Positions 9,835-64,000 are shown, numbered from the stretch's first letter. The stretch: DNA of 64,000 bases from Octopus sinensis (GCF_006345805.1 NC_043024.1:10292001-10356000); one strand, 5' to 3'. The notes: generated by a model not told the origin, from the letters alone. Numbers and translations: made by a program.

Positions 9835-10220
9835 TTTGTGTCGGTGGCACGTAAAAGCACCATCCGTTCGTGTCCGTTGCCAGCATCACCTGGCCCCGTG
9901 CCGGTGACACATAAAAGCACCATCCGTTCATGGCCGTTGCCAGCATCGCCTGGCCCCGTGCCGGTGACACGTAAAAGCACCATCCGTTCATGGCCGTTGC
10001 CAGCATCGCCTGGCCCCGTGCCGGTGACACGTAAAAGCACCATCCGTTCGTGGCCGTTGCCAGCATCGCCTGGCCCCGTGCCGGTGACACGTAAAAGCAC
10101 CATCTGTTCGTGGCCGTTGCCAGCATCGCCTGGCCCCGTGCCGGTGACACGTAAAAGCACCATCCGTTCGTGGCCGTTTGCTAGGTCAGTCTGGCACCTG
10201 TGCAAGTGGCACGTAAAAAA
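9835..10220 (+). repeat. 60-bp minisatellite (about 5.5 copies) inside an RTE 3' UTR
   Basis: Unit aligns exactly with the 60-nt lines; continues into the RTE tail ending near 10385. Confidence 0.92.
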
Positions 10221-16386: not shown

Positions 16387-17709
16387 AATATTTATTACTC
16401 ATTTACATTAAATTATGACAACCCAACCATATGTTGCAGGCTTATCTTGCTTCTTTGCGGTTCCAAGTTACCATTGCTATTACCGTTTTTTAGCAATTCA
16501 GATTCTATGGAATATCGTCGACTTTTGGAAGCGTTAGTCTGCTAAACGCAATCTTTTTTGTTTTACTCTCTCTTTTACTCTTTTACTTGTTTCAGTCATT
16601 TGACTGCGGCCATGCTGCAGCACCGCCTTTAGTCAAGCAAATCGACCCCAGGACTTATACTTTGTAAGCCCAGTACTTATTCTATCGGTCTCTTTTGCCG
16701 AACCGCTAAGTGACGGGGACGTAAACACACCAGCATGGGTTGTCAAGCAATGCTAGGGGGACAAACACAGACACACATATATATATACATATATACGACT
16801 GGCTTCTTTCAGTTTCCGTCTACCAAATCCACTCACACGGCATTGGTCGGCCCGGGGATATAGCAGAAGACACTTGCCCAAGATGCCACGCAGTGGGACT
16901 GAACCCGGAACCATGTGGTTGGTTTTTTGTTTCTTTCTTGTTTAGCTGGGGTACAGCCTTGAAGAACTTTCAGTTGAATGTATCAACTCCAGTACTAATT
17001 CTTTTTCAAAATCTGGTACCTGTATCGGTTTCCTTTGCCAAACTGCTAAGTTAAGGGGACGTAAACGCACTAACACCGGTTGTTAAGCGGTGGCGGGAGT
17101 CAAACACACACACACACACACACATTCTTTTATTCTTTTACTTGTTTCAGTCATTTGACTGTGTCCATGCTGGGGCACCACCTTAAAGGCCTCTTTTGCC
17201 GAACCGCTAAGTTACAGGGATGTAAACGCACCAATATCGGTTGTCAAGCGATGGGTGGGGAAGAGAAGCGGAAAAAAAATACACATATGTTTATGCACAA
17301 CGGGCTTCTTTCAGTTTCCGCCTACCAAATCCACTCACAAGGCTTTAGTTGGCCCGAAGCTATAGTAGGAGACGATTATGGAAAAACATTTTTTTTTTTT
17401 ATTAGTGTGATATAAGGGGGATTTAGCTGTTGTTTTTAGCACATCTCACCACCACCTGATACCTTCCTTGTTTCTTTGTCACTGACATATACTCTTACTC
17501 TTTTTACTCTTTTACTTGTTTCAGTCATTTGACTGCGGCCATGCTGGAGCACCGCCTTTAGTTGTGAAAATCGACCCCGGGACTTATTCTTCGGAAGCCT
17601 AGTACTTATTCTATCGGTCTCTTTTGCCGAACCGTTAAGTTACAGGGACGTAAGCACACCAGCATCGGTTGTCAAGTGATGTTGTGGGGACAAGCACAGA
17701 CAAAGAAAC

Positions 17710-19958: not shown

Positions 19959-20015
<57 letters not shown>

Positions 20016-20220
20016 ATGTGTGAGTATGTGTGTGTGTGTGAGTATATGTGTGTGTGTGTATATATGTTTGTGTGTGTGTAAATATATGTGTGAGTATATG
20101 TGTGTGTGTATATATGTGTGAGTATATATATATATATATATGTGTGTGTGCATGTGTATACATATATGTGTGTGTGTATATATATATATGTGTGAGTATA
20201 TATATATATGTGTGTGTGTG

Positions 20221-20258
<38 letters not shown>

Positions 20259-20302
20259 AAAAAAATCTGATTATGTCTGTTTCTTCTTCAGAAATTTCAG
20301 TG

Positions 20303-20569
20303 ATGGAATCCAGACAACGGAGGCACACCAAACCTTCGGCTAACAACAACCAGAAGAACATTCCTGCAGAGGACAAGAAAGCCAAACGTGGTAGCAAAAA
20401 GAAGAAGGTGCCTGCAGCTTCTCCTCCAAATAGTCGTCCCAGTACTGGACAATGCGTGACCATCTTGTGGGGCCTGATCGGTATATTGGCTGCTGTCGCC
20501 ATTGGTTACGCACATGCAAGGTACATGTCCACCTTGCACGACAACTATCTTTGGTTTTCTCAGATTTCA
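20303..20569 (+). CDS. DPY19L3: DPY19L3-like alternative N-terminal coding exon 1a (89 aa: basic tail, TM1, ...LHDNYLWFSQIS)
   Basis: Open frame MESRQRR...; hydrophobic VTILWGLIGILAAVAIGY; motif homologous to DPY19L3 LHENxLWFSNIK; phase-0 GTAAGT donor at 20570; pyrimidine tract and AG acceptors at 20291 and 20300. Confidence 0.85.
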
Positions 20570-21522
20570 GTAAGTACCTTGTTTATCTTTTATTCTTTTT
20601 ACTTGTTTCGGTTATTAGACTGTGGCCATGCTGGGGTACCACCTTGAATGTATCGACTCCAGTACTTGTTTTTTTGGGGGGGTTTTTTGGGGGGTTTTTT
20701 TTTGTAAACTTGGTACTTATTCTTTTGGTCTCTTTTGCCAAAGCACTGTTACATGGATGCAAACACATTAACACCGGTGTCAAGTGGTGATGGGGGGACA
20801 AACAATGACAAATACACACACACATATCTAAACCATAAAACCCCATGTAATTTGCACACCTGTGTAGTTTACACAGGTGAGTTTCAGGATAAAAATTGTT
20901 AAAAAAAGCTTCTACTCATGCAAAATTCGCACCCAAGAGTTTTCAGAATTTCCAATATGGCTAGGGAAAAAAGGTTTTCAATTTAGTTGTACTTAGCACA
21001 ATTAGATTTCATTAAATAAAAATAATTTCTGTTAACAGGTAACATATTAAAAACTCTGTGCCGGTGGCACGTAAAAAGTACCATCCGATCGTGGCCATTG
21101 CCAGCCTTGCCTGGCCTCTGTGCCGGTGGCACGTAAAAGGCACCATCCAATTGTGGCCATTTGCCAGCCTCGTCTGGCACATAAAAAGCACCCACTACAC
21201 TCATGGAGTGGTTGGCGTTAGGAAGAGCATCCGGCTATAGAAACACTGCCAGATCAGACTGGGCCTGGTGCAGCCTTCTGGCTTCCCAGATCCCAGTTGC
21301 ACCGTCCCAGCCATGCCAGCATGGAAAGCGGACGCTAAACGATGATGATGATGAAGTGTTTGTGTTGTTTATAATAACCTTTATTTTACACTTCTTTTCC
21401 ACAAGAGATTATGTCCGATCTTTAGACATACTTCTGTAATCATGATTACAGGAAAAGTTGATAATTCTTATCAACAAAGACAAAGCTGATAAATATGCAC
21501 AAGTGTTGCAAAATAAATTTAA

Positions 21523-21906
21523 TCTCTCTCTATATAAACGGCAGTTTGTCTGTGTGTGTTTCTGTGTGTCTGTTAGGTTGTACCCTCACCCTGACCACGG
21601 CTTTCAACCGATTCTGATGAAACTTGACACACACATAGCCCAATGTCATAATTCAAAACTAACGCAGCGAAAATTTTGAAAAGTTCCCCCAGTTCTGAAA
21701 AAAATCGATAAATTCGACATGGGGTCGAGAATCAGAAACACAAACCGCAAACTGTCTAGGGGACGCAACTCCACCTTTTTTCACTCTCAAAAAAAATTTA
21801 CCATCATTTTTTTCCATTTTTTTGCTATTTTTTGGCTATAACTCTCTAAAAATGCTTTATAGTTATTTCCCTTACAAACCTGAGCAACGCCGGGCGATAC
21901 TGCTAG
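21523..21906 (+). mobile_element. Non-autonomous Helitron; a 3' piece of the same family lies on - at about 27796-28110
   Basis: A|TC start (tctctctctatataaa); 3' gcaacgccgggcgatactgCTAG|T; no TSD. Confidence 0.8.
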
Positions 21907-22843
21907 TTACTGATAAACATCAGCTTGGATGATACTTTATTCAACTGATAGATGAAGGTGACCAATCAGACCGATTTTGTAAACAGAATTCTGATTGGTC
22001 GAAAGTGTCTTCTTGTCTCAAGCTCTGATTTTCTGCCTATTCTTGTCGGAACCTTTGATATGGAGTATTGAAATTTTAATCCCTTTCACACATATAAAAT
22101 GTCAAGCAAACTTAAAAATTTGTCATTACCGTTTTAGCCGGGATACCAAAGTGATAGTTTGGTAATCCGCTGAAACAAACATTAAAAATCGAAAGGAGAA
22201 AATAAACAGCTTTGCAAGTTTAACTCAGTGTTTATTGAACAAGAGAGGTGCAAAATTTAAGAAGTGACTTGTTAGAATATACATGTCTGTGAGGAGACAT
22301 AAACAAGAATAGCAAAAATCTACTATGCCAGAGGAACTGGTGATACATATATTACAAGTGTTCTATGAAGAGAACATAAGATTGCTGCCATAATTCAACA
22401 TGAATGCGAAACAACATTAAACATCGTATTAGGTAAATGAAGGTTTCTATAGGAACGCTACGTCATATTCACTTAGTGACACCACTGGGAGGTGGTCCTC
22501 AAAGTCGCTGGAAATAGAGATCTCCAGGTCCAAATTCTTGGATGGCCCCACTACACTCTTGGTGTGGTTGGCATTATGAAGGACATCCAACTGCAGAAAC
22601 CATGCCAAATCAGATTGCAACCTGGTGCCACTTCCCAGTTTTTGGTCAAACTGTCCAACCTATGCCAGCATGGAAAACAGATGTTAAATGAAGATGATGT
22701 TGATAATGATATATATATTTTTATATACATTAAATCTATATTGATTTCGTGGAAACAGCTTGCCAAAGATTTGACATGGTCACCAGCTGTTCTAATTAAC
22801 TCCCTCTGCTAGTTCATTTTTGTAACATAAAACTTAAGGTGTT

Positions 22844-22880
<37 letters not shown>

Positions 22881-23374
22881 CATCATCATCATTTTAACAT
22901 CCATTTTTCCAAACTAGCCTGGGTCACATGTAATTTGTTAAAGCAGATTTTTACAGCCGGATGCTCCTCCCCTGCTTCCTGGAAAGGTAATAATTCCTCA
23001 TAGCTAGACATTTTATACGGAAGACCACAGATGAACAACCCCACTTGTTTGACAATGATACATATTTACAACTGTTATGTGATATCAAGACTAGGGTACA
23101 CATGCACACAGAGGTGTCTGTGTGTATAGATATACATACATATAGGAGATATGCTGTGACTGCGAAGACCCGACAAATAATGTGAGTTCATGGCTGTTCC
23201 TGCACCAGCTTCACATGGAAGACCCAGCCCATCCAAAGTGCCTTGAATCGTAGGGCAACCTACTGTCCTTGAGGAGACCTATTGAGTCAAATACATTAAC
23301 ATCAAAAAATCAAAAGGAAATTGTAGACGTGATACCTCTGCCAGTGGCATGTAAAAAGCACCATCCGAACGTGG

Positions 23375-24310
23375 CCGATGCCAGTGCCGCCTTGACTGGC
23401 TTCGATGCCGGTGGCACGTAAAAAGCACCAACTGATTGGGGCCGATGCCAGTGCCGCCTTGACTGGCTTCGATGCCGGTGGCACGTAAAAAGCACCAACT
23501 GATTGGGGCCGATGCCAGTGCCGCCTTGACTGGCTTCGATGCCGGTGGCACGTAAAAAGCACCAACTGATTGGGGCCGATGCCAGTGCCGCCTTGACTGG
23601 CTTCGATGCCGGTGGCACGTAAAAAGCACCAACTGATTGGGGCCGATGCCAGTGCCGCCTTGACTGGCTTCGATGCCGGTGGCACGTAAAAAGCACCAAC
23701 TGATTGGGGCCGATGCCAGTGCCGCCTTGACTGGCTTCGATGCCGGTGGCACGTAAAAAGCACCAACTGATTGGGGCCGATGCCAGTGCCGCCTTGACTG
23801 GCTTCGATGCTGGTGGCACGTAAAAAGCACCAACTGATTGGGGCCGATGCCAGTGCCGCCTTGACTGGCTTCGATGCTGGTGGCACGTAAAAAGCACCAA
23901 CTGATTGGGGCCGATGCCAGTGCCGCCTTGACTGGCTTCGATGCCGGTGGCACGTAAAAAGCACCAACTGATTGGGGCCGATGCCAGTGCCGCCTTGACT
24001 GGCTTCGATGCTGGTGGCACGTAAAAAGCACCAACTGATTGGGGCCGATGCCAGTGCCGCCTTGACTGGCTTCGATGCTGGTGGCACGTAAAAAGCACCA
24101 ACTGATGGGGCCGATCCAGTGCCTCCTTGACTGGCTTCGATGCGGTGGCACGTAAAAAGCACCAACTGATTGGGGCCGATGCCAGTGCCGCCTTGACTGG
24201 CTTCGATGCTGGTGGCACGTAAAAAGCACCAACTGATTGGGGCCGATGCCAGTGCCGCCTTGACTGGCTTCGATGCTGGTGGCACGTAAAAAGCACCAAC
24301 TGATTGGGGC
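23375..24310 (+). repeat. 67-bp minisatellite, about 14 near-identical copies, within an RTE 3' UTR
   Basis: Period counted from gcacgt at 23414 to 23481; flanked 5' by the RTE ORF-end/3' UTR segment also seen at 19450 and 45150. Confidence 0.95.
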
Positions 24311-24314
24311 CGGG

Positions 24315-24510
24315 CGTCTCCATTCTTTGTTATCTCACCTGAAAGGTTCAACATCCTGAGATTGTCCTTGAGTACTTCATCCCACATCTTTCTGGGTCTT
24401 CCGCTTCCACATGTGCCATCTGCTTTGAGAGATCAGCACTTCTTTATGTGTCTGTCAGCATCCATCCACATCACATGACCAAGCCAGCTCTGTCTTCTTT
24501 CTCTCTTGCA
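24315..24510 (-). mobile_element. RTE LINE ORF C-terminal fragment; similar pieces at 30590-30735 and 39480-39690 (-)
   Basis: WLGHVMWM...GTCGSGRPRKMWDEVLKDNL; the 39456-39638 ORF gives RWYGHVMHM...GRGRPRKTWDEVVKHDL. Confidence 0.8.
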
Positions 24511-24795
24511 CACAGCAACTAATTCCTCTTATGCCACAGAGGAGAATACACTCTTTTTACTTGTTTCAGTCATTTGACTGTGGTCATGCTGGAGCACCGC
24601 CTTTAGTCAAGCAACTCGACCCCGGGACTTATTCTTTGTAAGCCCAGTACTTATTCTATCGGTCTCTTTTGCCGAACTGCTAAGTTACAGGGACGTAAAC
24701 ACACCAGCATTGGTTGTCAAGCTATGTTAGGGGGACAAACACAGACACACAAACGTATACACACACATATGTATACACATACATACATATATATA

Positions 24796-24935
24796 GCACA
24801 GGGGATAGCGTGCTGGACTTCTAATCCAGTGGTCGTGGGTTCGAATCCCACCAGGGATGCTGACTGCTACTTTCCGTCCAGCCTGTGCTAGCACGGAAAA
24901 CTGACATTAAACGATGATGATGATGATGATGAGAT
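24796..24935 (+). pseudogene. tRNA-Arg(TCT)-derived sequence fused to an RTE 3' tail
   Basis: Anticodon stem ctgga/tccag with TCT at 24820-24822; T-arm gtggg-ttcgaat-cccac; cagggatg acceptor 3' strand; then ccgtccagcctgtgctagcacggaaaactgacattaaac(gat)n. Confidence 0.8.
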
Positions 24936-25597
24936 GATACGACAGGCTTCTTTCAGTTTCCGTCTACCAAATCCACTCACAAGGTATTGGTTGGCCCGAG
25001 TCTATAGTAGAAGACACTTGCCCAAGGTGCCACGCAGTGGGACTGAACCTGAAACCATGTGGTTGGTAAGCAAGCTACTTACCACACAGTCACTCCTGCA
25101 CCTTTTGAAATCAATTTGAAGGGAAAACAATTTCTGCCTCTCTACCTATCTGTCTATTTGTCTCTCTGCCTCTCTGTCTATCTGTTTATTTGTCTATCTA
25201 TCTACCTATCTTTACATATTCACACACACACACACACACACATATCTATACACTTGTATATACACTTGTAATTCATTCTTGGTAACAGCTGTTAATGTTT
25301 GTGCATGATGCTATATATTTGTGTGTGTGCGTGTGTGTATTTATGTTGGTTTGTGTTTATGGGTTTTGGAGTGTGTGTGTGTGTGTATTCTTGTATCTGT
25401 GTGTGTGTGTGTGAGTGTGTTTGCACACATTTGCTTACCAAAAAGAAAAAGAATTTTCTCTAAGTCTTGCAAAAATCACTTCGTAAATCTGTTTCAATCT
25501 GTATAGATTCTTGCCACAACCTGCGACACACACACGCGCATTCTCTCTGTCTGTCTGTCTGTCTGTCTTTCTCTCTTCCCCTCACACACGCATCAAC

Positions 25598-25634
<37 letters not shown>

Positions 25635-25669
25635 TGTACAAACACATGTACACATTCTTTGTCTGTCTG

Positions 25670-25726
<57 letters not shown>

Positions 25727-26090
25727 TATACATATACATGCACACACACTCCCTGTCTTGCACACACACACACACGTCAGACCTATCCACCTTCTCTCCC
25801 TCATCCTTCTCCTCCCTCTTTGCCTCTTCATCATATGCACTTTGGTCCTCCCTCTTTCTCTTCCCCCACTCACTCACACACACTCTCTCAACCATTACTA
25901 CTACCACCACCACTCACTCCTCCTCCTCCTACTACTACTACAAAGTTTGACAGCCAAATACTAAGGTGGAGACCAAGTGTTGAGGAGGACCTGAGAACTG
26001 TTCTGTGATTTGCAAACCCAGGCTTATACAGGCGCACGCAGCAGTCCTTTCTCTCTTGCTTACCTATCTATCCATCTATCTATCTACCTA

Positions 26091-26131
<41 letters not shown>

Positions 26132-26816
26132 GTCTGTCTGTCTGACTACATATCTATCTATCTACCTGCTACTCTCTCTATCTGCCTATCTATCTACCTG
26201 CCTATCTATCTATCTATCTGCCTATCTATCTATCTGCCTATCTGCCTCTCTGTCTATCTCCCTCTCTGCCTATCTACCTCTTTACCTCTCTGTCTATCTA
26301 CCTCTCTATCTATCTATCTATCTCTCTGCCTCTCTATCTGTTTATTTGTCTATCTATCTACCTATCTTTACATATTCACACACATATCTCCACGCTTGTA
26401 CATACACTTGTAATCCATTCTTGTTGCCACTTATTTACACACACCCATTCATTCATTCACCACACACACTAACTCATACACATTCTGTCCATCTCATTCT
26501 CACACACAAACACACACACACACACAAACTCACCCAAACATATACTTGCTTATTCACACAAATTCAAAAGAACACACAGATATTCTCCTACATACTTTTT
26601 CACATTTTCCACTTTGCCAATTATTTTCCGTCTCCCTTTGTCTAATCCTTAATTACTTTTAACTTAATTTTAACTCCCCTCAATGCATTTAATTACCGTG
26701 TTCCCCCCTCCTCTTTTACATTCTTAACCTCACCTACTAACGGCGTTAACCATTGTCCTTCTATACCGTATCACATACATACATACATACATACATACAT
26801 ACATACATACATACAT

Positions 26817-26853
<37 letters not shown>

Positions 26854-26859
26854 TCCCTG

Positions 26860-27105
26860 ATGCCTGAACCCCGACACCGTCACAAGAAGCGGTCTACCAC
26901 CACCAATGGCCAGAAGAAGCAGACCCCGATCAGCAACACTACAGAATCCAGCGCAGACGCACAGACAGGGTCCGCCTTGCTCTGGAACCTCATCTGGTTG
27001 GTCAGCATTGCACTGGGTGCATACGTCTGTTGCATTTGCGGCTGGAAGCATGCCCTCTACATGGCTCAACTGCACGAGAACCAGTTATGGTTTTCCAACA
27101 TTAAG
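26860..27105 (+). CDS. DPY19L3: DPY19L3-like alternative N-terminal coding exon 1b (82 aa: basic tail, TM1, ...LHENQLWFSNIK)
   Basis: Open frame MPEPRHRHKK...; TM LLWNLIWLVSIALGAYVCCICGW; LHENQLWFSNIK nearly identical to vertebrate DPY19L3 as remembered; phase-0 AAG|GTGAG donor. Confidence 0.9.
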
Positions 27106-28212
27106 GTGAGCTCTTTCTAGGAAGGACAGGCTCGGGTCACAGTAGTAGTATTAGTGGTGGTTGTGTGTTGTGGTGAAGGTGTGTGTAGTGAATGTGTGTG
27201 GCCCACAAGCATATGGTTGTGAGTTCAGTTCTCAGGAGTACCTTGTATCCTTGAGCAAGACATTCTGTTTCATGTTGCACTTCTCTGTGGAGGCACGTGG
27301 CCTAGTGGTTAGAGCAGCGGACTCGCGGTCGAGGGATCGCGGGTTTGAATCTCAGACCGGGCAATGTATGTGTTTATGAGTGAAACACCTAAGCTCCACT
27401 TCTGCTGACTCTTTTGCCACAACTTTCTCTCACTCTTTCCTTCTGCATCTTGCAGCTCACCTGTGACAGACCAGCGTCCCGTCCAGGTGGGGAACCTATA
27501 CGCCCAGAAACCGGAAAACCGGACCTTATGAGCCAGGCATGGCTCGAGAAGGAACAAACAACAAACAAATGTTGCCCCACTCCACTCAGCTGTCAAAAAC
27601 GAGTTGTATTTCAAAGGATCAGCCTTGTGTCACATTCTGTATCACACTGAATCTCCCTGAGAACTACATCCAGGGTACATACGTCTGTGGGGTACTCAAC
27701 CACTTGCATGTTAATTTCACAAGCTGGCTGTTCCATTGATTGGATTAATCGGAACCCACATCATCATACCTGACAGTGATCTTTCTATCTATCTACTAGC
27801 AGTATTGCCCGGCGTTGCTTGGGTTTGTTTCGATCCTTTAGAATTGGAATTTTTGAAAAGTAGAAATTTTGCATCAAGTAGCTTGTTATTCTCTTTAAGC
27901 GAACATTTTTCTGGTTGAAATACACTGAAAGATGGCAACACAGCAGTCAAAAAATCGTAAAAAATAGGGATTTTCATAGAAAAAAAGCGCCTTTTTGATG
28001 TAAATAATTTTTGGTGTTAACATGGTCTGATTTGAAATTTTTTCTTCTATGGAATGAAGAGCAAGCCCTCTTCTATCATACTCTAAATTTTGGTCAACTT
28101 GTGCTGCAGGGTCTCTGAGGAAATAGTATTAGTTGAAGGCTACCAAACCTGCCACACACAGACAACTTCAGCTTTATATATAGAGAGATTATTAATATTA
28201 TTATTATTATTA

Positions 28213-28248
<36 letters not shown>

Positions 28249-28332
28249 CAAAAGAGTAGCAAGCCAGCAGAATTGTTAGCACTCCAGACAAAATGTTTAG
28301 TGACATTTTATTTATCTTTACATTCTGAGTTC

Positions 28333-28937
28333 AAATACCTATTTCTTTACTACCCACTTGGGGCTAAACACAGAGAGGACAAACAAGGACAGACAAAGGG
28401 ATTAAGTCGATTACATCGACCCCAGTGCGTAACTGGTCCTTAATTTATCGACCCCGAAAGGATGAAAGGCAAAGTCGACCTCGGCGGAATTTGAACTCAG
28501 AACGTAGCGGCAGACGAAATACCTATTTCTTTACTACCCACAAGGGGATAAACACAAAGGGGACAAACAAGGACAGACAAACGGATTAAGTCGATTACAT
28601 CGACCCCAGTGCGTAACTGGTACTTAATTTATCGACCCCGAAAGGATGAAAGGCAAAGTCGACCTCGGCGGAATTTGAACTCAGAACGTAGCGGCAGACG
28701 AAATACCTATTTCTTTACTACCCACAAGGGGATAAACACAAAGGGGACAAACAAGGACAGACAAACGGATTAAGTCGATTACATCGACCCCAGTGCGTAA
28801 CTGGTACTTAATTTATCGACCCCGAAAGGATGAAAGGCAAAGTCGACCTCGGCGGAATTTGAACTCAGTACGTAACGGCAGACGAAATACGGCTATGCAT
28901 TTCACCCGGCGTGCTAACGGTTCTGCCAACTCGCCGC
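28333..28937 (-). mobile_element. Meta/MESC-type tRNA SINE trimer (184-bp units)
   Basis: Core gcctttcatcctttcggggtcgataaattaagtacc; units start at 28333, 28517 and 28701; a single tRNA head at the right end. Dimers at 37265-37660, 40085-40497 and 60760-61155; monomers near 62470 and 63760. Confidence 0.8.
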
Positions 28938-29139
28938 CTTATTCTGAGTTCAAATATCATCAGAGTCGAGTTTGCTTTTCATCCCTTCAGGGGTCGATAA
29001 AATAAGTACCAGTCATGTACTGAAGTCAATGTAATCAACTTACCCCCCTCTTCCATAACTGTTGACCCTGTACCAAAATTTGAAACTAATATTATATGCC
29101 ATTCATTTAATCCTTTATGTTACTGTTCATTCTTTGCAG

Positions 29140-29230
29140 GAATTGGAACGAGAAATATCCTTCCGGACGGAGTCGGGCTTGTACTATTCCTATTATAAGC
29201 AGATGGTGAATGCTCCATCAATAATGGAAG
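29140..29230 (+). CDS. DPY19L3: DPY19L3 common exon 2 ([30 protein letters not shown])
   Basis: Hallmark DPY19 motif; cag acceptor; phase 0 to 1. Confidence 0.96.
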
Positions 29231-30869: not shown

Positions 30870-30994
30870 GAATCAACAGCCTCACCAACGACACCCTGAC
30901 CGAGTTCCCCAGCAGCATCAACGTCATTGAGAGGATGAACATTTACCAGGAAATAATCCTTGCCACCATTTACAGGAGTTTCACCGTCATTCAC
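30870..30994 (+). CDS. DPY19L3: DPY19L3 exon 3 (INSLTNDTLTEFPSSINVIERMNIYQEIILATIYRSFTVIH)
   Basis: RMNIYQE motif; phase 1 to 0; gtaagt donor. Confidence 0.95.
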
Positions 30995-31921: not shown

Positions 31922-32067
31922 AAGAATTTCCAGCCAGTTTTCTTCTACATCCACACCATATTTTCCCTTCACGGTGCCTTGGTCAGTTCCCTGTTCATCA
32001 CAGCATGGATGTTAAGTGAGTCATGGTTGACCGGCGTTCTTGCTGCTAGCTTTTACATCTTCAACAG
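31922..32067 (+). CDS. DPY19L3: DPY19L3 exon 4 (KNFQPVFFYIHTIFSLHG...SFYIFN)
   Basis: Homology; phase 0 to 2; canonical sites. Confidence 0.95.
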
Positions 32068-33584: not shown

Positions 33585-33708
33585 ACTAGATACTACAAGG
33601 GTAGAATATGTCATCCCACTGCGAGAGAGTTTCTCGTTGCCCTTCCTCTGGTTCCAAGTGGCAGCGATCTCATACTATCTACGTTGGAAGACAAACCCAG
33701 TACTGAAT
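33585..33708 (+). CDS. DPY19L3: DPY19L3 exon 5 (LDTTRVEYVIPLRESFSLPFLWFQ...)
   Basis: DTTRV...PLRE motif; phase 2 to 0. Confidence 0.96.
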
Positions 33709-35364: not shown

Positions 35365-35499
35365 AAAATCTCCATTGCTGTTGTGGCCTTCAGCACATTC
35401 CTCTTCATGCTGTTCTGGCAATTCAGCCAATTTATCGTTCTACTGCAGACATTCTCTCTTTTTGCTGTCTGGGTACTTGGCATGGTACCCCAACACAAG
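35365..35499 (+). CDS. DPY19L3: DPY19L3 exon 6 (KISIAVVAFSTFLFMLFWQFSQF...)
   Basis: WQFxQF motif; phase 0 to 0. Confidence 0.95.
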
Positions 35500-36578: not shown

Positions 36579-36710
36579 GTGAAGGTGTTGCTCGTCATCG
36601 AACTGTGCAACCTTCTGCTGGTGTCTGTGATGCAGTTCTGCAGTCCAATGATAATTGGCTCACTGGCAGTCAGCTTCATTCTATCATTCATGATCCTGCT
36701 TATGTTCAAG
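36579..36710 (+). CDS. DPY19L3: DPY19L3 exon 7 (VKVLLVIELCNLLLVSVMQF...MFK)
   Basis: TM segment; phase 0 to 0; tag/gtagg sites. Confidence 0.92.
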
Positions 36711-37743: not shown

Positions 37744-37848
37744 AACTACCTCTTTTCTGCGGGCGGCAGCTTTTACCAATTCTTTAAGGTTTCAGTTTTT
37801 AGCCTGGCTTCGCTTGTGTTGATGGTAGCCATCAACAAGCTGATTAAG
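37744..37848 (+). CDS. DPY19L3: DPY19L3 exon 8 (NYLFSAGGSFYQFFKVSVFSLASLVLMVAINKLIK)
   Basis: 105 bp open; cag/gtaagt; phase 0 to 0. Confidence 0.88.
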
Positions 37849-39354: not shown

Positions 39355-39428
39355 GTTGCGATTTCACTGGATGCTGATGAACATATCTTCAAGTTTCTTC
39401 TCACCAAATTTGGACTCGGCTCTTACAC
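39355..39428 (+). CDS. DPY19L3: DPY19L3 exon 9 (VAISLDADEHIFKFLLTKFGLGSY), probable GC donor
   Basis: DEHIFKFL..KFGLG motif; only AC|GCAAGT gives the phase 2 needed for exon 10. Confidence 0.88.
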
Positions 39429-39698
39429 GCAAGTCTCACGCTTAAGCTAATCGTCTCACCTGGCAGCCCTCCCTGTCATTATCTCTGTGAAGCCCAAAGT
39501 TTGGAGATCATGCTTCACCACCTCATCCCATGTCTTCCTGGGTCTACCTCTACCGCAGGTTCCCTCTGCAGTTAGGGATCGGCACTTCTTTACACAGTTG
39601 TTCTTGTTCATATGCATCACATGACCGTACCAGCGCATTCGTATCTCTCAAAATGCTTATACTCTGTCAAACACGCACACTGACATGTTACTCTAGTC

Positions 39699-40646: not shown

Positions 40647-40808
40647 TGACTTTGACTCCCAACTCTATCTGTGCAACGGAGCGTTTGGATTCCTAGAATG
40701 GGACACGTTTGTGCGCCTAACCAATGGTTTTGTCTTCCCAGTTTATGCTGTGGGTCACGGGAGCTTATTGGTGCTGATGCTGGTCTCCTGTTTCAAGAAA
40801 TGGCGCCA
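40647..40808 (+). CDS. DPY19L3: DPY19L3 exon 10 (DFDSQLYLCNGAFGFL...KKWR)
   Basis: DFD..LYLC..AFG motif; phase 2 to 2. Confidence 0.94.
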
Positions 40809-41993: not shown

Positions 41994-42058
41994 TAAATCC
42001 CTGACATCCAATTATCGTCCCTTGCTGTTCGCTCGACCGGAAATTGCTTTCCACACAG
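41994..42058 (+). CDS. DPY19L3: DPY19L3 exon 11 (KSLTSNYRPLLFARPEIAFHT)
   Basis: Bridges phase 2 to phase 1 exactly; RPEIAF matches the remembered KPETAY segment. Confidence 0.85.
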
Positions 42059-44238: not shown

Positions 44239-44333
44239 CCTACAATTGACCACTGAATGGAATATGACCAAAACCAAAGCTGGAATGCTCATCTCTTTTA
44301 ATTCCCCTGTTTTTCTTGCCTATTTCTTTGCAG

Positions 44334-44485
44334 TTCAAGCGCTCCTCTTTGGTCTCTTGGCTGTTAGCACCTTGCGTATGAAATACCTCTGGACACCATA
44401 CATGTGTATACTGGGCAGTGTTTTTCTTGCTGACCGCAAGGCTTGGAAAGCAGTCCTTTCCAAGGTCACTGACCAAGAATATATA
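44334..44485 (+). CDS. DPY19L3: DPY19L3 exon 12 (QALLFGLLAVSTLRMKYLWTPYMC...)
   Basis: RMKYLW motif; phase 1 to 0. Confidence 0.96.
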
Positions 44486-45404: not shown

Positions 45405-45461
45405 GTATTCCTGTTTCGCCATTTTGTTATCGGAAGCATCCTGGCATCTCTTCTTTACACT
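45405..45461 (+). CDS. DPY19L3: DPY19L3 exon 13 (VFLFRHFVIGSILASLLYT)
   Basis: 57 bp; cag/gtaagt; phase 0 to 0; TM-like. Confidence 0.85.
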
Positions 45462-47489: not shown

Positions 47490-47572
47490 GTATTACCAAG
47501 TGTCTATAAAGAACTTGAAGACCTCAAAGAATTCTGGGACCCAGACACGGTTGATTTAATGGAATGGATAAA
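47490..47572 (+). CDS. DPY19L3: DPY19L3 exon 14 (VLPSVYKELEDLKEFWDPDTVDLMEWI)
   Basis: EFxDPDTVxLMxWI motif; phase 0 to 2. Confidence 0.96.
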
Positions 47573-48831: not shown

Positions 48832-48964
48832 AACAAACAGTGCCCCAGCTGCAGCATTTAGTGGCAGCATGCAGCTAATGGCTGGGGTCAAACTGTGTAC
48901 GGGAAGAGCAATTACCAACCATCCACATTACGAACACAAGTTGCTTCGCCAGAAAACCAAAATG
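48832..48964 (+). CDS. DPY19L3: DPY19L3 exon 15 (AFSGSMQLMAGVKLCTGRAITNHPHYE...)
   Basis: Highly conserved DPY19 luminal motif; phase 2 to 0. Confidence 0.97.
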
Positions 48965-50429: not shown

Positions 50430-50585
50430 ATTTACCAAATCTATGGCCGGAAACCTCCAGAAGAGATCTACAAAATCCTGACGCATTATAAAACCACTCA
50501 CATAATCCTCGAAGACAGTATATGCCTGGCGCCATCAAGGAACGGATGTCGCACACCAGACTTGATTGATGTTGTGAACGGAGAG
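50430..50585 (+). CDS. DPY19L3: DPY19L3 exon 16 (IYQIYGRKPPEEIYKIL...ILEDSIC...GCRTPDLIDVVNGE)
   Basis: Motif match; phase 0 to 0. Confidence 0.96.
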
Positions 50586-52661: not shown

Positions 52662-52811
52662 CTCCCTGATGATGTCAGCCACAGAAATGGATTGGTGAGG
52701 AACAAACACCCAAGGTTTTGCGACGAGATCCGGAAGGGTGCCAAGCGTTATACCAAATACTTCCGACTGGTCTTTGAAAACAGGACATTCCGGGTCTATC
52801 AGTTGCTTTAA
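52662..52811 (+). CDS. DPY19L3: DPY19L3 terminal exon 17 (LPDDV...HPRFCDEIRK...FRLVFENRTFRVYQLL*)
   Basis: PRFC and F..VF.N.TF.VY motifs; TAA stop; shared exons total 1890 nt, in frame. Confidence 0.96.
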   Translation, partial: LPDDVSHRNGLVRNKHPRFCDEIRKGAKRYTKYFRLVFENRTFRVYQLL

Positions 52812-63300: not shown

Positions 63301-63405
63301 CTCGATTAAAGGCAGTGCTCCAGCATGGCCGCAGTCAAATGACTGAAACAAGTAAAAGAGTAAAGAGAGAGTACAAAAAACTGAGGTAAAACAAAAGCTT
63401 GTTAC

Positions 63406-63546
63406 CAAGAGAGGGCTTCACTGAAGGAGACGACAAGTATGGGAAAGACGAAGCAGCAGTAGAATTATCCCAATGCCACAGGGAACCATCTTCGGAGCAA
63501 GTGAATAAATGGTTGGGATAGGCTGAGTGGAATTTCACTTCCCACA
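63406..63546 (-). CDS. NUP43: NUP43 penultimate exon (WEVKFHSAYPNHLFTCSEDGSLWHWD...)
   Basis: WEV.FH...P.HLFTCSEDGSLWHWD WD40 motif; tttcag acceptor, gtaac donor; phase 1 to 1. Upstream exons lie beyond the window. Confidence 0.93.
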
Positions 63547-64000
63547 CTGAAACAGAAAACAAAACATCGGAGATGAGTTACAGTTAAAGGGATTAAAACA
63601 AATTAAAATGATCGTTTTTGGAACGGTGAATCTCGTAGCAGATAAAGCTATACAATGATAGCATGTAAATACTGTTTAAAATAAAATTTTAAAAAAAATC
63701 TTGGAGAGAAAAAGTCAGTGTTGAGCAGCCTTTAACTTTTTCTATCTAATGATTTTATTTCTTTATTGCCCACAAAGGGCTAAGCAGAGGGGACAAACAA
63801 GGACAGATAAATGGATTAAGTCGATTATATCGATCTCAGTGCGTAACTGGTACTTAATTTATCGACCCTGAAAGGATGAAAGGCAAAGTCAACCTCGGCG
63901 GAATTTGAACTCAGAACGTAATAGCAGACGATATACCGCTAAGCATTTCGACCAGCATGCTAACGTTTCTGCCAGCTCACCGTGTTTCTATCTTATTTCT

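Follow-up and report, generated by a model that had tools for sequence, protein, structure and literature searches.

Two old first coding exons, probably used alternatively, in a DPY19L3-type gene of Octopus sinensis

Thrombospondin repeats and cytokine-receptor motifs are C-mannosylated by the members of a small enzyme family, which has been expanded by gene duplication in vertebrates. At the UGT1A locus, which also encodes a glycosyltransferase of the endoplasmic reticulum (ER), variable first exons are selected by promoter choice, and Drosophila loci of the Gr39a type reportedly join alternative 5' exons, encoding N-terminal transmembrane segments, to common 3' exons. In the clustered protocadherins and in the 5' cassettes of chelicerate sDscam, an exon which lacks an acceptor enters the mRNA only as the first exon (PMC4835542). 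A further described class comprises isoforms created by tandem duplication, in which adjacent, homologous exons of the same phase are included one per transcript, are ancient and evolve under purifying selection (PMC9013439, PMC8373072). Here we analyse a 64,000-nucleotide (nt) stretch of the Octopus sinensis genome (GCF_006345805.1, NC_043024.1:10292001-10356000; hereafter the window, with positions counted from its first letter), which contains a complete 17-exon gene of the DPY19 family, L3 type, with two candidate alternative first coding exons, named 1a and 1b.

The locus belongs to the well-known class of alternative exons derived from tandem exon duplication, in its variable-first-exon kind. 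It resembles the described tandem-duplication isoforms in its adjacent, homologous, same-phase exons, and in a swap which replaces a structural element, here the first transmembrane helix (TM1) and the start of the first luminal loop (EL1), while leaving the fold unchanged. Those isoforms mostly depend on internal cassettes chosen by the spliceosome, whereas here the variable unit is the first coding exon, each copy with its own ATG. With the protocadherin, UGT1A and sDscam loci it shares duplicated 5' exons, each with a start codon and a 5' splice site of its own, followed by common downstream exons; it differs in having two variable exons rather than an array, in the position of 1a behind an untranslated exon, and in a variable part made of a cytosolic tail and one membrane helix instead of a substrate-binding or recognition domain. 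As at Gr39a, duplicated 5' exons encode the membrane-spanning N-terminus of a multi-pass protein, but there the variable part is said to be most of the receptor, and here it is about 12% of the protein.

On balance we consider it likely that 1a and 1b are two old first exons, both kept and used alternatively via two promoters. The elements on which this reading depends are the following (CDS, coding sequence; UTR, untranslated region).

20276-20291, plus strand: acceptor of exon 1a, ctgtttcttcttcag, read in the sequence 11 nt ahead of the ATG.
20292-20569, plus strand: exon 1a, with 11 nt of 5'UTR and the CDS at 20303-20569 (89 codons, ending ...YMSTLHDNYLWFSQIS; EL1 start LHDNYLWFSQIS).
20570-20577, plus strand: donor of exon 1a, gtaagtac, phase 0 (ATTTCA/gtaagt).
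26580-26859, plus strand: AG-free stretch of 280 nt just 5' of the 1b ATG, ending in (ACAT)n(CA)n; presumed 5'UTR and promoter-proximal sequence of a second promoter.
26860-27105, plus strand: CDS of exon 1b (82 codons, ending ...YMAQLHENQLWFSNIK; canonical EL1 start LHENQLWFSNIK).
27106-27111, plus strand: donor of exon 1b, gtgagc, phase 0 (ATTAAG/gtgagc).
29140-29230, plus strand: exon 2, 91 nt, following ttctttgcag; common to both isoforms, it holds the equivalent of CeDPY19 Glu71.

Exons 1a and 1b lie 6.3 kb apart, and 1b is separated from exon 2 by 2.0 kb. They have the features of tandem duplicates, being adjacent, homologous, both of phase 0 and similar in length (89 vs 82 codons). Their proteins are 34% identical (BLASTP, E 8e-12), and either one is about as similar to the N-terminal exon of distant animals as it is to the other. 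At the DNA level, only the last ~55 nt can still be aligned (71%), and the flanks retain no residual similarity. Exon 1b alone matches Pfam Dpy19 at positions 1-24. An earlier note on this DNA had described two homologous but diverged first exons, open, ending in phase-0 GT donors and joining exon 2 in frame, and all of this was borne out on direct reading; its start coordinate, 20292, is the first base past the acceptor-like ctgtttcttcttcag. Both spliced coding sequences are open to the stop at 52809-52811 and give proteins of 736 (1a) and 729 (1b) amino acids. These replace the 718 and 711 proposed earlier; the 18-residue gap lies in the downstream exons and does not bear on the finding, and the difference of seven residues between the isoforms is the same. 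It had also been claimed that exons 2-17 are single, and tblastn indeed detects one copy of exon 2 and of each of the other downstream exons detected in the window, exon 1 alone being present twice. Exon 1a was also considered as the stray first exon of another gene, which was rejected: there are no other DPY19 exons and no other gene nearby, and the phase of its donor fits exon 2.

The sequence in front of the two ATGs is what distinguishes them. At related loci, the ATG of the first coding exon is mostly preceded, at 5-18 nt, by a polypyrimidine tract and an AG, and an acceptor in this position entails an untranslated exon upstream. Exon 1a retains this arrangement and is thus an internal exon behind a 5'UTR exon rather than a true first exon. 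Exon 1b, on the contrary, has its own ATG and 5' splice site and no 3' splice site, with no AG in the 280 nt before its ATG against about 14 expected; the same holds for exon B, the downstream member of a second exon pair found on the invertebrate contig L019. Lacking a 3' splice site, 1b could enter an mRNA only as the first exon and would be skipped in transcripts starting further upstream, so the choice would have to fall at transcription initiation, and two promoters are favoured over mutually exclusive splicing of cassettes. Both mechanisms had been put forward in the earlier note; the alternative promoters fit the sequence, while the cassettes are at odds with a 1b devoid of a 3' splice site.

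In the cassette scheme, one promoter would produce one pre-mRNA from which the spliceosome picks either exon. Tandemly duplicated homologous exons are often mutually exclusive (PMC9013439, PMC8373072), and 1a, having an acceptor, is an internal exon; nevertheless, 1b remains AG-free for 280 nt, L019 exon B is without a polypyrimidine/AG acceptor, and both exons, in the manner of first coding exons, have an ATG and an N-terminal basic motif of their own, which makes the scheme very improbable. Joint inclusion of the two exons, with the 1a donor spliced to a cryptic acceptor within 1b and a product bearing two TM1-like helices, is barely credible. The first AGs past the AG-free zone (26885-26886 and 26888-26889) keep the frame of 1b (phase 0), and at about 26735 there is a branch-point motif resembling TACTAAC, but the tract preceding the AGs at 26885-26889 is not pyrimidine-rich, with two helices ahead of EL1 the catalytic loop would come to lie on the wrong membrane face, and the ATG and basic motif of 1b (R-H-R-H; RRRK in L019 exon B) would be purposeless.

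With two promoters, the history and operation of the locus can be outlined as follows. The first coding exon would have been duplicated in tandem long ago and both copies kept. An upstream promoter would drive transcripts in which an untranslated exon 0 is spliced to the 1a acceptor and the 1a donor to exon 2, with 1b being skipped; a second promoter, between 1a and 1b, would yield transcripts which begin with 1b and whose 1b donor is joined to exon 2. The outcome would be two enzymes with the same catalytic residues, pocket and luminal dome but a different tail, TM1 and first turn of EL1. From the sequence we infer expression of both exons, the existence of the second promoter, and isoforms whose basic chemistry is shared but whose regulation, localisation or partners differ. 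The CpG profile has no distinct island at either exon, and its CpG-rich stretches are repeats.

The age of the duplication can be gauged from a related clade. An exhaustive HMMER search with exon 1a alone retrieved P0071, a genomic open reading frame (ORF) in a Logan assembly (L005), which reads MDVRQRK...GILAAVTAGYIHAKYMFTLHDNYLWFSHIT and then enters an intron. It represents a clade of three closely related taxa (L005; L007-L011; L012), the runs behind L005, L007 and L012 being ERR14857104, ERR12921341 and ERR3431203. In these three the 1a-type exon has its acceptor 11 nt before the ATG, as in the window, and the donor of the L005 clade, gtaagtac, is identical to that of window 1a. Over the last 34 codons, window 1a and L005 are identical at 26, 29 and 14 of the first, second and third codon positions, respectively (positions 1 and 2 vs 3, P = 8e-5), and just 8 of their 21 conserved degenerate codons are identical; synonymous divergence between the two lineages is therefore near saturation. 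In bootstrapped neighbour-joining trees of a 34-residue core, 76% of replicates unite window 1a with L005 and 0% unite it with 1b, so the duplication is older than the split between the window lineage and the L005 clade. This supports the ancient exon duplication which had been suggested, one predating the split from at least one distant clade, and the recurrence of the two-exon layout in L019 agrees with it.

Within the L005 clade, the 261-nt 1a-type exon shows five synonymous and four conservative non-synonymous differences and no indels. The ratio of non-synonymous to synonymous differences (pN/pS) is 0.18-0.26, with a binomial P of 0.023 for so few non-synonymous changes. The flanks are 3-7% different and rich in indels, and the exon is less diverged than its flanks in three of three pairs (P = 0.035, 0.002 and 0.041), at about half the flank mismatch rate; all of these comparative statistics come from one short exon. 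Given the low pN/pS, the lack of indels and the lower divergence, the 1a-type exon is, as far as these sequences tell, conserved and selected, and such a constrained orthologue rules out window 1a as a dead or decaying duplicate.

For exon 1b the argument is indirect. None of the residues invariant in this region (H, E, N, W, F, S) has been lost from it, and it departs less from the family consensus than 1a does. When neutral substitution was simulated, ATG and ORF came through intact in 1.9% of runs with 0.5 substitutions per site and in 0.2% of those with 1.0, without indels being taken into account. Because its ATG, ORF, donor and invariant residues are intact despite saturated synonymous divergence, we conclude that selection has probably acted on 1b during most of the period following the duplication. 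Both copies appear constrained; pN/pS of about 0.2 in the related clade establishes it across species for 1a, and the part concerning 1b rests on this indirect reasoning.

The same layout was encountered a second time in L019, a 218-kb contig of an invertebrate from the European Nucleotide Archive (ENA; ERZ25084522), in the 20 kb around P0075.

10001-10219: L019 exon A, ...MGYIHANYMVTIHENWMWFSNIK, with a good acceptor, ctttttctttag, 8 nt before the ATG and a phase-0 donor.
16622-16855: L019 exon B, ...CVFCGYKHTMYVNLIHENNLWFSNIK, 6.4 kb past exon A, with a phase-0 donor.
From 19249: L019 exon 2, 2.4 kb past exon B.

The spacing between the first exons and from the second of them to exon 2 is 6.3 and 2.0 kb in the window vs 6.4 and 2.4 kb in L019, and no acceptor-like (polypyrimidine/AG) sequence stands in front of exon B. 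C..CG[WY]KH and a TM1 with three cysteines are common to the downstream exons, 1b and B, while GY.HA.YM and zero or one cysteine mark the upstream ones, 1a and A. The sole nucleotide match between the window and L019 joins the end and donor of 1b with the end and donor of B (92% over 25 nt), and no conserved intronic elements were found between the two. An apparent tandem array, which may be an assembly artefact, is located just 5' of the real exon 2 of L019 (L019:17678-19240), with about 20 copies of a 74-nt unit and 89% matches; in the unit, the last ~20 nt of the intron, including its cag acceptor, are followed by 54 nt from the beginning of exon 2. Any of the copies might act as a decoy acceptor, and the window has no comparable array.

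Several results weigh against two old first exons, both kept and driven by two promoters. No exon 0, first promoter or neighbouring gene was recognised in the 20 kb upstream of 1a, all of which is repeats and microsatellites. Exact ORF look-ups with both exons read through returned no match, and in word-index searches of protein collections with 1a plus exon 2, 1b plus exon 2 and exons 2-7, identities did not exceed 58% and every DPY19 match was 425 amino acids long or shorter. The start context of 1b is poor (C at -3 and +4) and microsatellites abut its ATG, so recent silencing is conceivable; the L005-clade contigs reach only ~1.2 kb past the exon, too short to show a 1b-type exon. Window 1b and L019 B join in 17% of bootstraps of a 34-position alignment, too few positions to establish their orthology, and two independent duplications are conceivable. 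Finally, no second N-terminal exon is present within 10 kb upstream or in intron 1 in Lymnaea (L003), Candidula (L004) or two other invertebrates (L001, L002). As to the database searches, the same protein collections yielded no full-length vertebrate DPY19L3 either, and the word index missed P0071 despite a shared nine-residue word; the no-match results are therefore weak evidence.

Part of these points would be expected if only one exon were used today and the other, most plausibly 1b, were a recently silenced relic which has not yet decayed. The weak start context and the (ACAT)n(CA)n directly upstream of 1b are in line with such silencing, as are the recovery of only 1a-type exons from the closest clade, on contigs too short to decide, and the want of transcript-supporting matches in the protein-collection searches and exact look-ups. 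However, the ATG, the ORF, a good donor and every invariant residue persist in 1b, which resembles the family consensus more than 1a does; since the split that the duplication predates, synonymous divergence has become saturated, so that 1b would have been maintained for most of that time; and L019 exon B is intact and likewise acceptor-less, which marks the missing acceptor as a stable state and not as decay. We thus regard a silenced 1b as unlikely.

The tree and the single-exon relatives bear instead on whether the window lineage and L019 acquired their exon pairs independently, in which case the pair in the window would be younger; this concerns history only, not function. In the trees neither 1b with L019 B nor 1a with L019 A is joined, and only one exon was found within 10 kb in gastropods and in two other invertebrates. 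Conversely, the two loci agree in exon order, in the asymmetry between an exon with an acceptor and one without, and in spacing; they share A-type and B-type signature residues in addition to the nucleotide match of B to 1b; and the exon pairs within a species nearly never group (0% and 1.4%). Independent origins are a serious but doubtful history, and we think that one ancient duplication is likelier than two on the sequences at hand. Given the single exon in Lymnaea, Candidula, L001 and L002, the pair was either lost in their lineages or is limited to part of the molluscs. The short contigs L005-L018 show one exon each and are too short to decide on a second. Two candidates from these searches were discarded: the P0077 cluster, taken as a possible 1b orthologue of the L005 clade, comes from different runs and bears an acceptor, and belongs to another species; L018, the sole locus found by scanning JGI/ENA metagenomes with the 1a-type alignment, is a HEN-type exon of another animal.

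The gene downstream of the alternative exons runs from 20303 to 52811 on the plus strand (CDS) and was modelled with the protein of L001, an almost intron-free relative, as tblastn guide and with splice sites read directly; the model is least certain at exons 11 and 13 and at the start of exon 12. Its remaining exons are common to both isoforms.

30870-30994, 31922-32067, 33585-33708, 35365-35499, 36579-36710 and 37744-37848, plus strand: exons 3-8, from tblastn against L001, splice-site reading and Pfam.
39355-39428 (GC donor), 40647-40808, 41994-42058, 44280-44485 and 45405-45461, plus strand: exons 9-13.
47490-47572, 48832-48964, 50430-50585 and 52662-52811, plus strand: exons 14-17, with the stop at 52809-52811.

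To keep the frame, exon 9 requires a GC-AG intron, TTACAC/gcaagt (39428-39434), a perfect GC-donor consensus, since no GT donor of the right phase keeps the conserved KFLLTKFGLG.

Pfam Dpy19 (PF10034) is matched over 1-653 of 653 positions in one stretch, with 704.8 bits for the 1b isoform and 700.6 bits for the 1a isoform. In CeDPY19, roles have been assigned to Glu71, Arg211, Arg471 and Lys473, and position 474, a Tyr in human DPY19L3, sets the sequon preference (PMC10154233). By alignment, the catalytic base Glu71 (7ZLG) is the E of FRTE in exon 2, the substrate-binding Arg211 falls in DTTRVEY, Arg471-Leu472-Lys473-Leu474 corresponds to LRMKY in exon 12, and LHEN/LHDN of exon 1 aligns with Phe50-Glu51-Asn52. 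A Tyr in place of Leu474 points to an L3-type enzyme, and with Glu rather than Asp as catalytic base it is what distinguishes the DPY19L3 subtype, whose preference is for WxxC (PMC10154233). The closest named relatives carry a DPY19L3 annotation, and the nearest accessible ones over exons 2-7 are gastropods, at 57-58% identity. Judged by sequence, then, the window gene is a DPY19-family tryptophan C-mannosyltransferase of the L3 type, which upholds the identity first proposed. The full Dpy19 domain and the equivalents of the four CeDPY19 residues are thus shared with CeDPY19 and DPY19L1-L4, as is the Tyr with human DPY19L3; the vertebrate DPY19L1-L4 (PMC10154233) are whole-gene paralogues, whereas part of the diversification here is inside one gene.

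The cytosolic tail, TM1 and the first turn of EL1, the start of which is about 20 residues ahead of the Glu71 equivalent, all come from the alternative exon. This exon ends about ten residues before the catalytic Glu, which lies in the shared exon 2; its placement in the tail, TM1 and first luminal loop had been correctly recognised. The tail of 1b is shorter than that of 1a and less charged (net +4 vs +11, the L005 orthologue having +10), and a basic motif occurs at residues 4-8 in all four exons, RQRR in 1a, RHRH in 1b and RRRK in both L019 A and L019 B. TM1 is ~6-7 residues longer in 1b, with three Cys (YVCCICGW), and spans approximately residues 49-69 in 1a, and the first turn of EL1 reads HDN...QIS in 1a vs the canonical HEN...NIK in 1b. 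AlphaFold2 models of exons 1-7 in both versions, a check proposed in the earlier note, are confident for both N-terminal modules: the mean predicted local distance difference test score (pLDDT) is 85.8 for 1b and 82.6 for 1a, with 92-97 in TM1, which is a single long helix (residues 36-76 in 1b, 49-83 in 1a). The best Protein Data Bank (PDB) matches of the 1a model are the CeDPY19 structures 7ZLG, 7ZLI and 7ZLH (TM-score 0.70-0.72), followed by STT3 of the oligosaccharyltransferase (OST), and the predicted N-terminal module superposes on 7ZLG/7ZLI.

At codon GAC (20540-20542), exon 1a has an Asp where the family has a near-invariant Glu (HEN; Glu51 in CeDPY19). In an alignment of 14 N-termini from molluscs, vertebrates, arthropod-like and CeDPY19-like sequences, Glu is present everywhere except in 1a, and in a wider table of 20 sequences everywhere except in 1a and L005. 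Glu is also given for 17 of 19 other sequences compared with 1a, CeDPY19 among them. As the Asp of HDN also occurs in the 1a-type exon of the L005 clade (L005:3040-3042), it is, by this comparison, old and maintained in 1a-type exons. A text match found no mention of Glu51 in the CeDPY19 structure paper, which places the dolichol groove at TM6/TM11 (PMC10154233). Shared exons supply the catalytic base as well as the peptide pocket, dolichol groove and luminal dome, so that the chemistry of the two isoforms is probably the same at its base. The Glu-to-Asp swap may alter the catalytic properties; the most economical reading is that the isoforms would differ by promoter regulation and by membrane environment or partners.

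More tentatively, and on balance doubtfully, the two N-termini may make functionally distinct C-mannosyltransferases from one gene, either through the ER subdomain or translocon reached by tail and TM1 or through catalysis via the EL1 Asp; this would be the exon-duplication counterpart, in some molluscs, of DPY19L1-L4, and the pair may predate the split from L019. The literature search returned no paper on DPY19L3 with octopus, nor on N-terminal or promoter isoforms of DPY19L3; the automated annotation of the source genome may already list both isoforms. The general phenomenon is familiar, and the value of the locus is therefore specific and not broad. It suggests a second route of diversification, in which one gene has an old and conserved choice between two versions of tail, TM1 and beginning of the catalytic loop. 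It also offers a natural experiment on the contribution of TM1 and the first turn of EL1 in a GT-C glycosyltransferase. Annotations of such genomes should hold both first exons, and expression studies should count the two junctions apart.

The surroundings of the exons are rich in repeats. Between 1a and 1b there is a young tandem repeat with a 67-bp unit (23339-24312, 14.6 copies, 97% matches), followed by a plus-strand Rfam tRNA match over the full model length (24787-24859, 44.4 bits). ARAGORN found no tRNA anywhere in the window, and the search for RNA families in 15-31 kb gave nothing beyond this match, which is probably the head of a tRNA-derived short interspersed element (SINE). A second young tandem repeat lies between 1b and exon 2 (28333-28890, three copies of a 184-bp unit, 97%), and each of the two exons is adjoined by a microsatellite tract, (TG/TA)n at 19959-20270 for 1a and (ACAT)n(CA)n at 26773-26850 for 1b. 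At the beginning of the window, 3-398 and 1228-1803 on the plus strand are retroelement remains with an RVT_1 fragment (E 4.4e-9) and further long ORFs. Close to its other end, an ORF on the minus strand (63335-63562) has no Pfam match and encodes a WD-repeat-like peptide, FHSAYPNHLFTCSEDGSLWHWDNS; going by this peptide, it is possibly an exon of a neighbouring gene convergent with DPY19L3.

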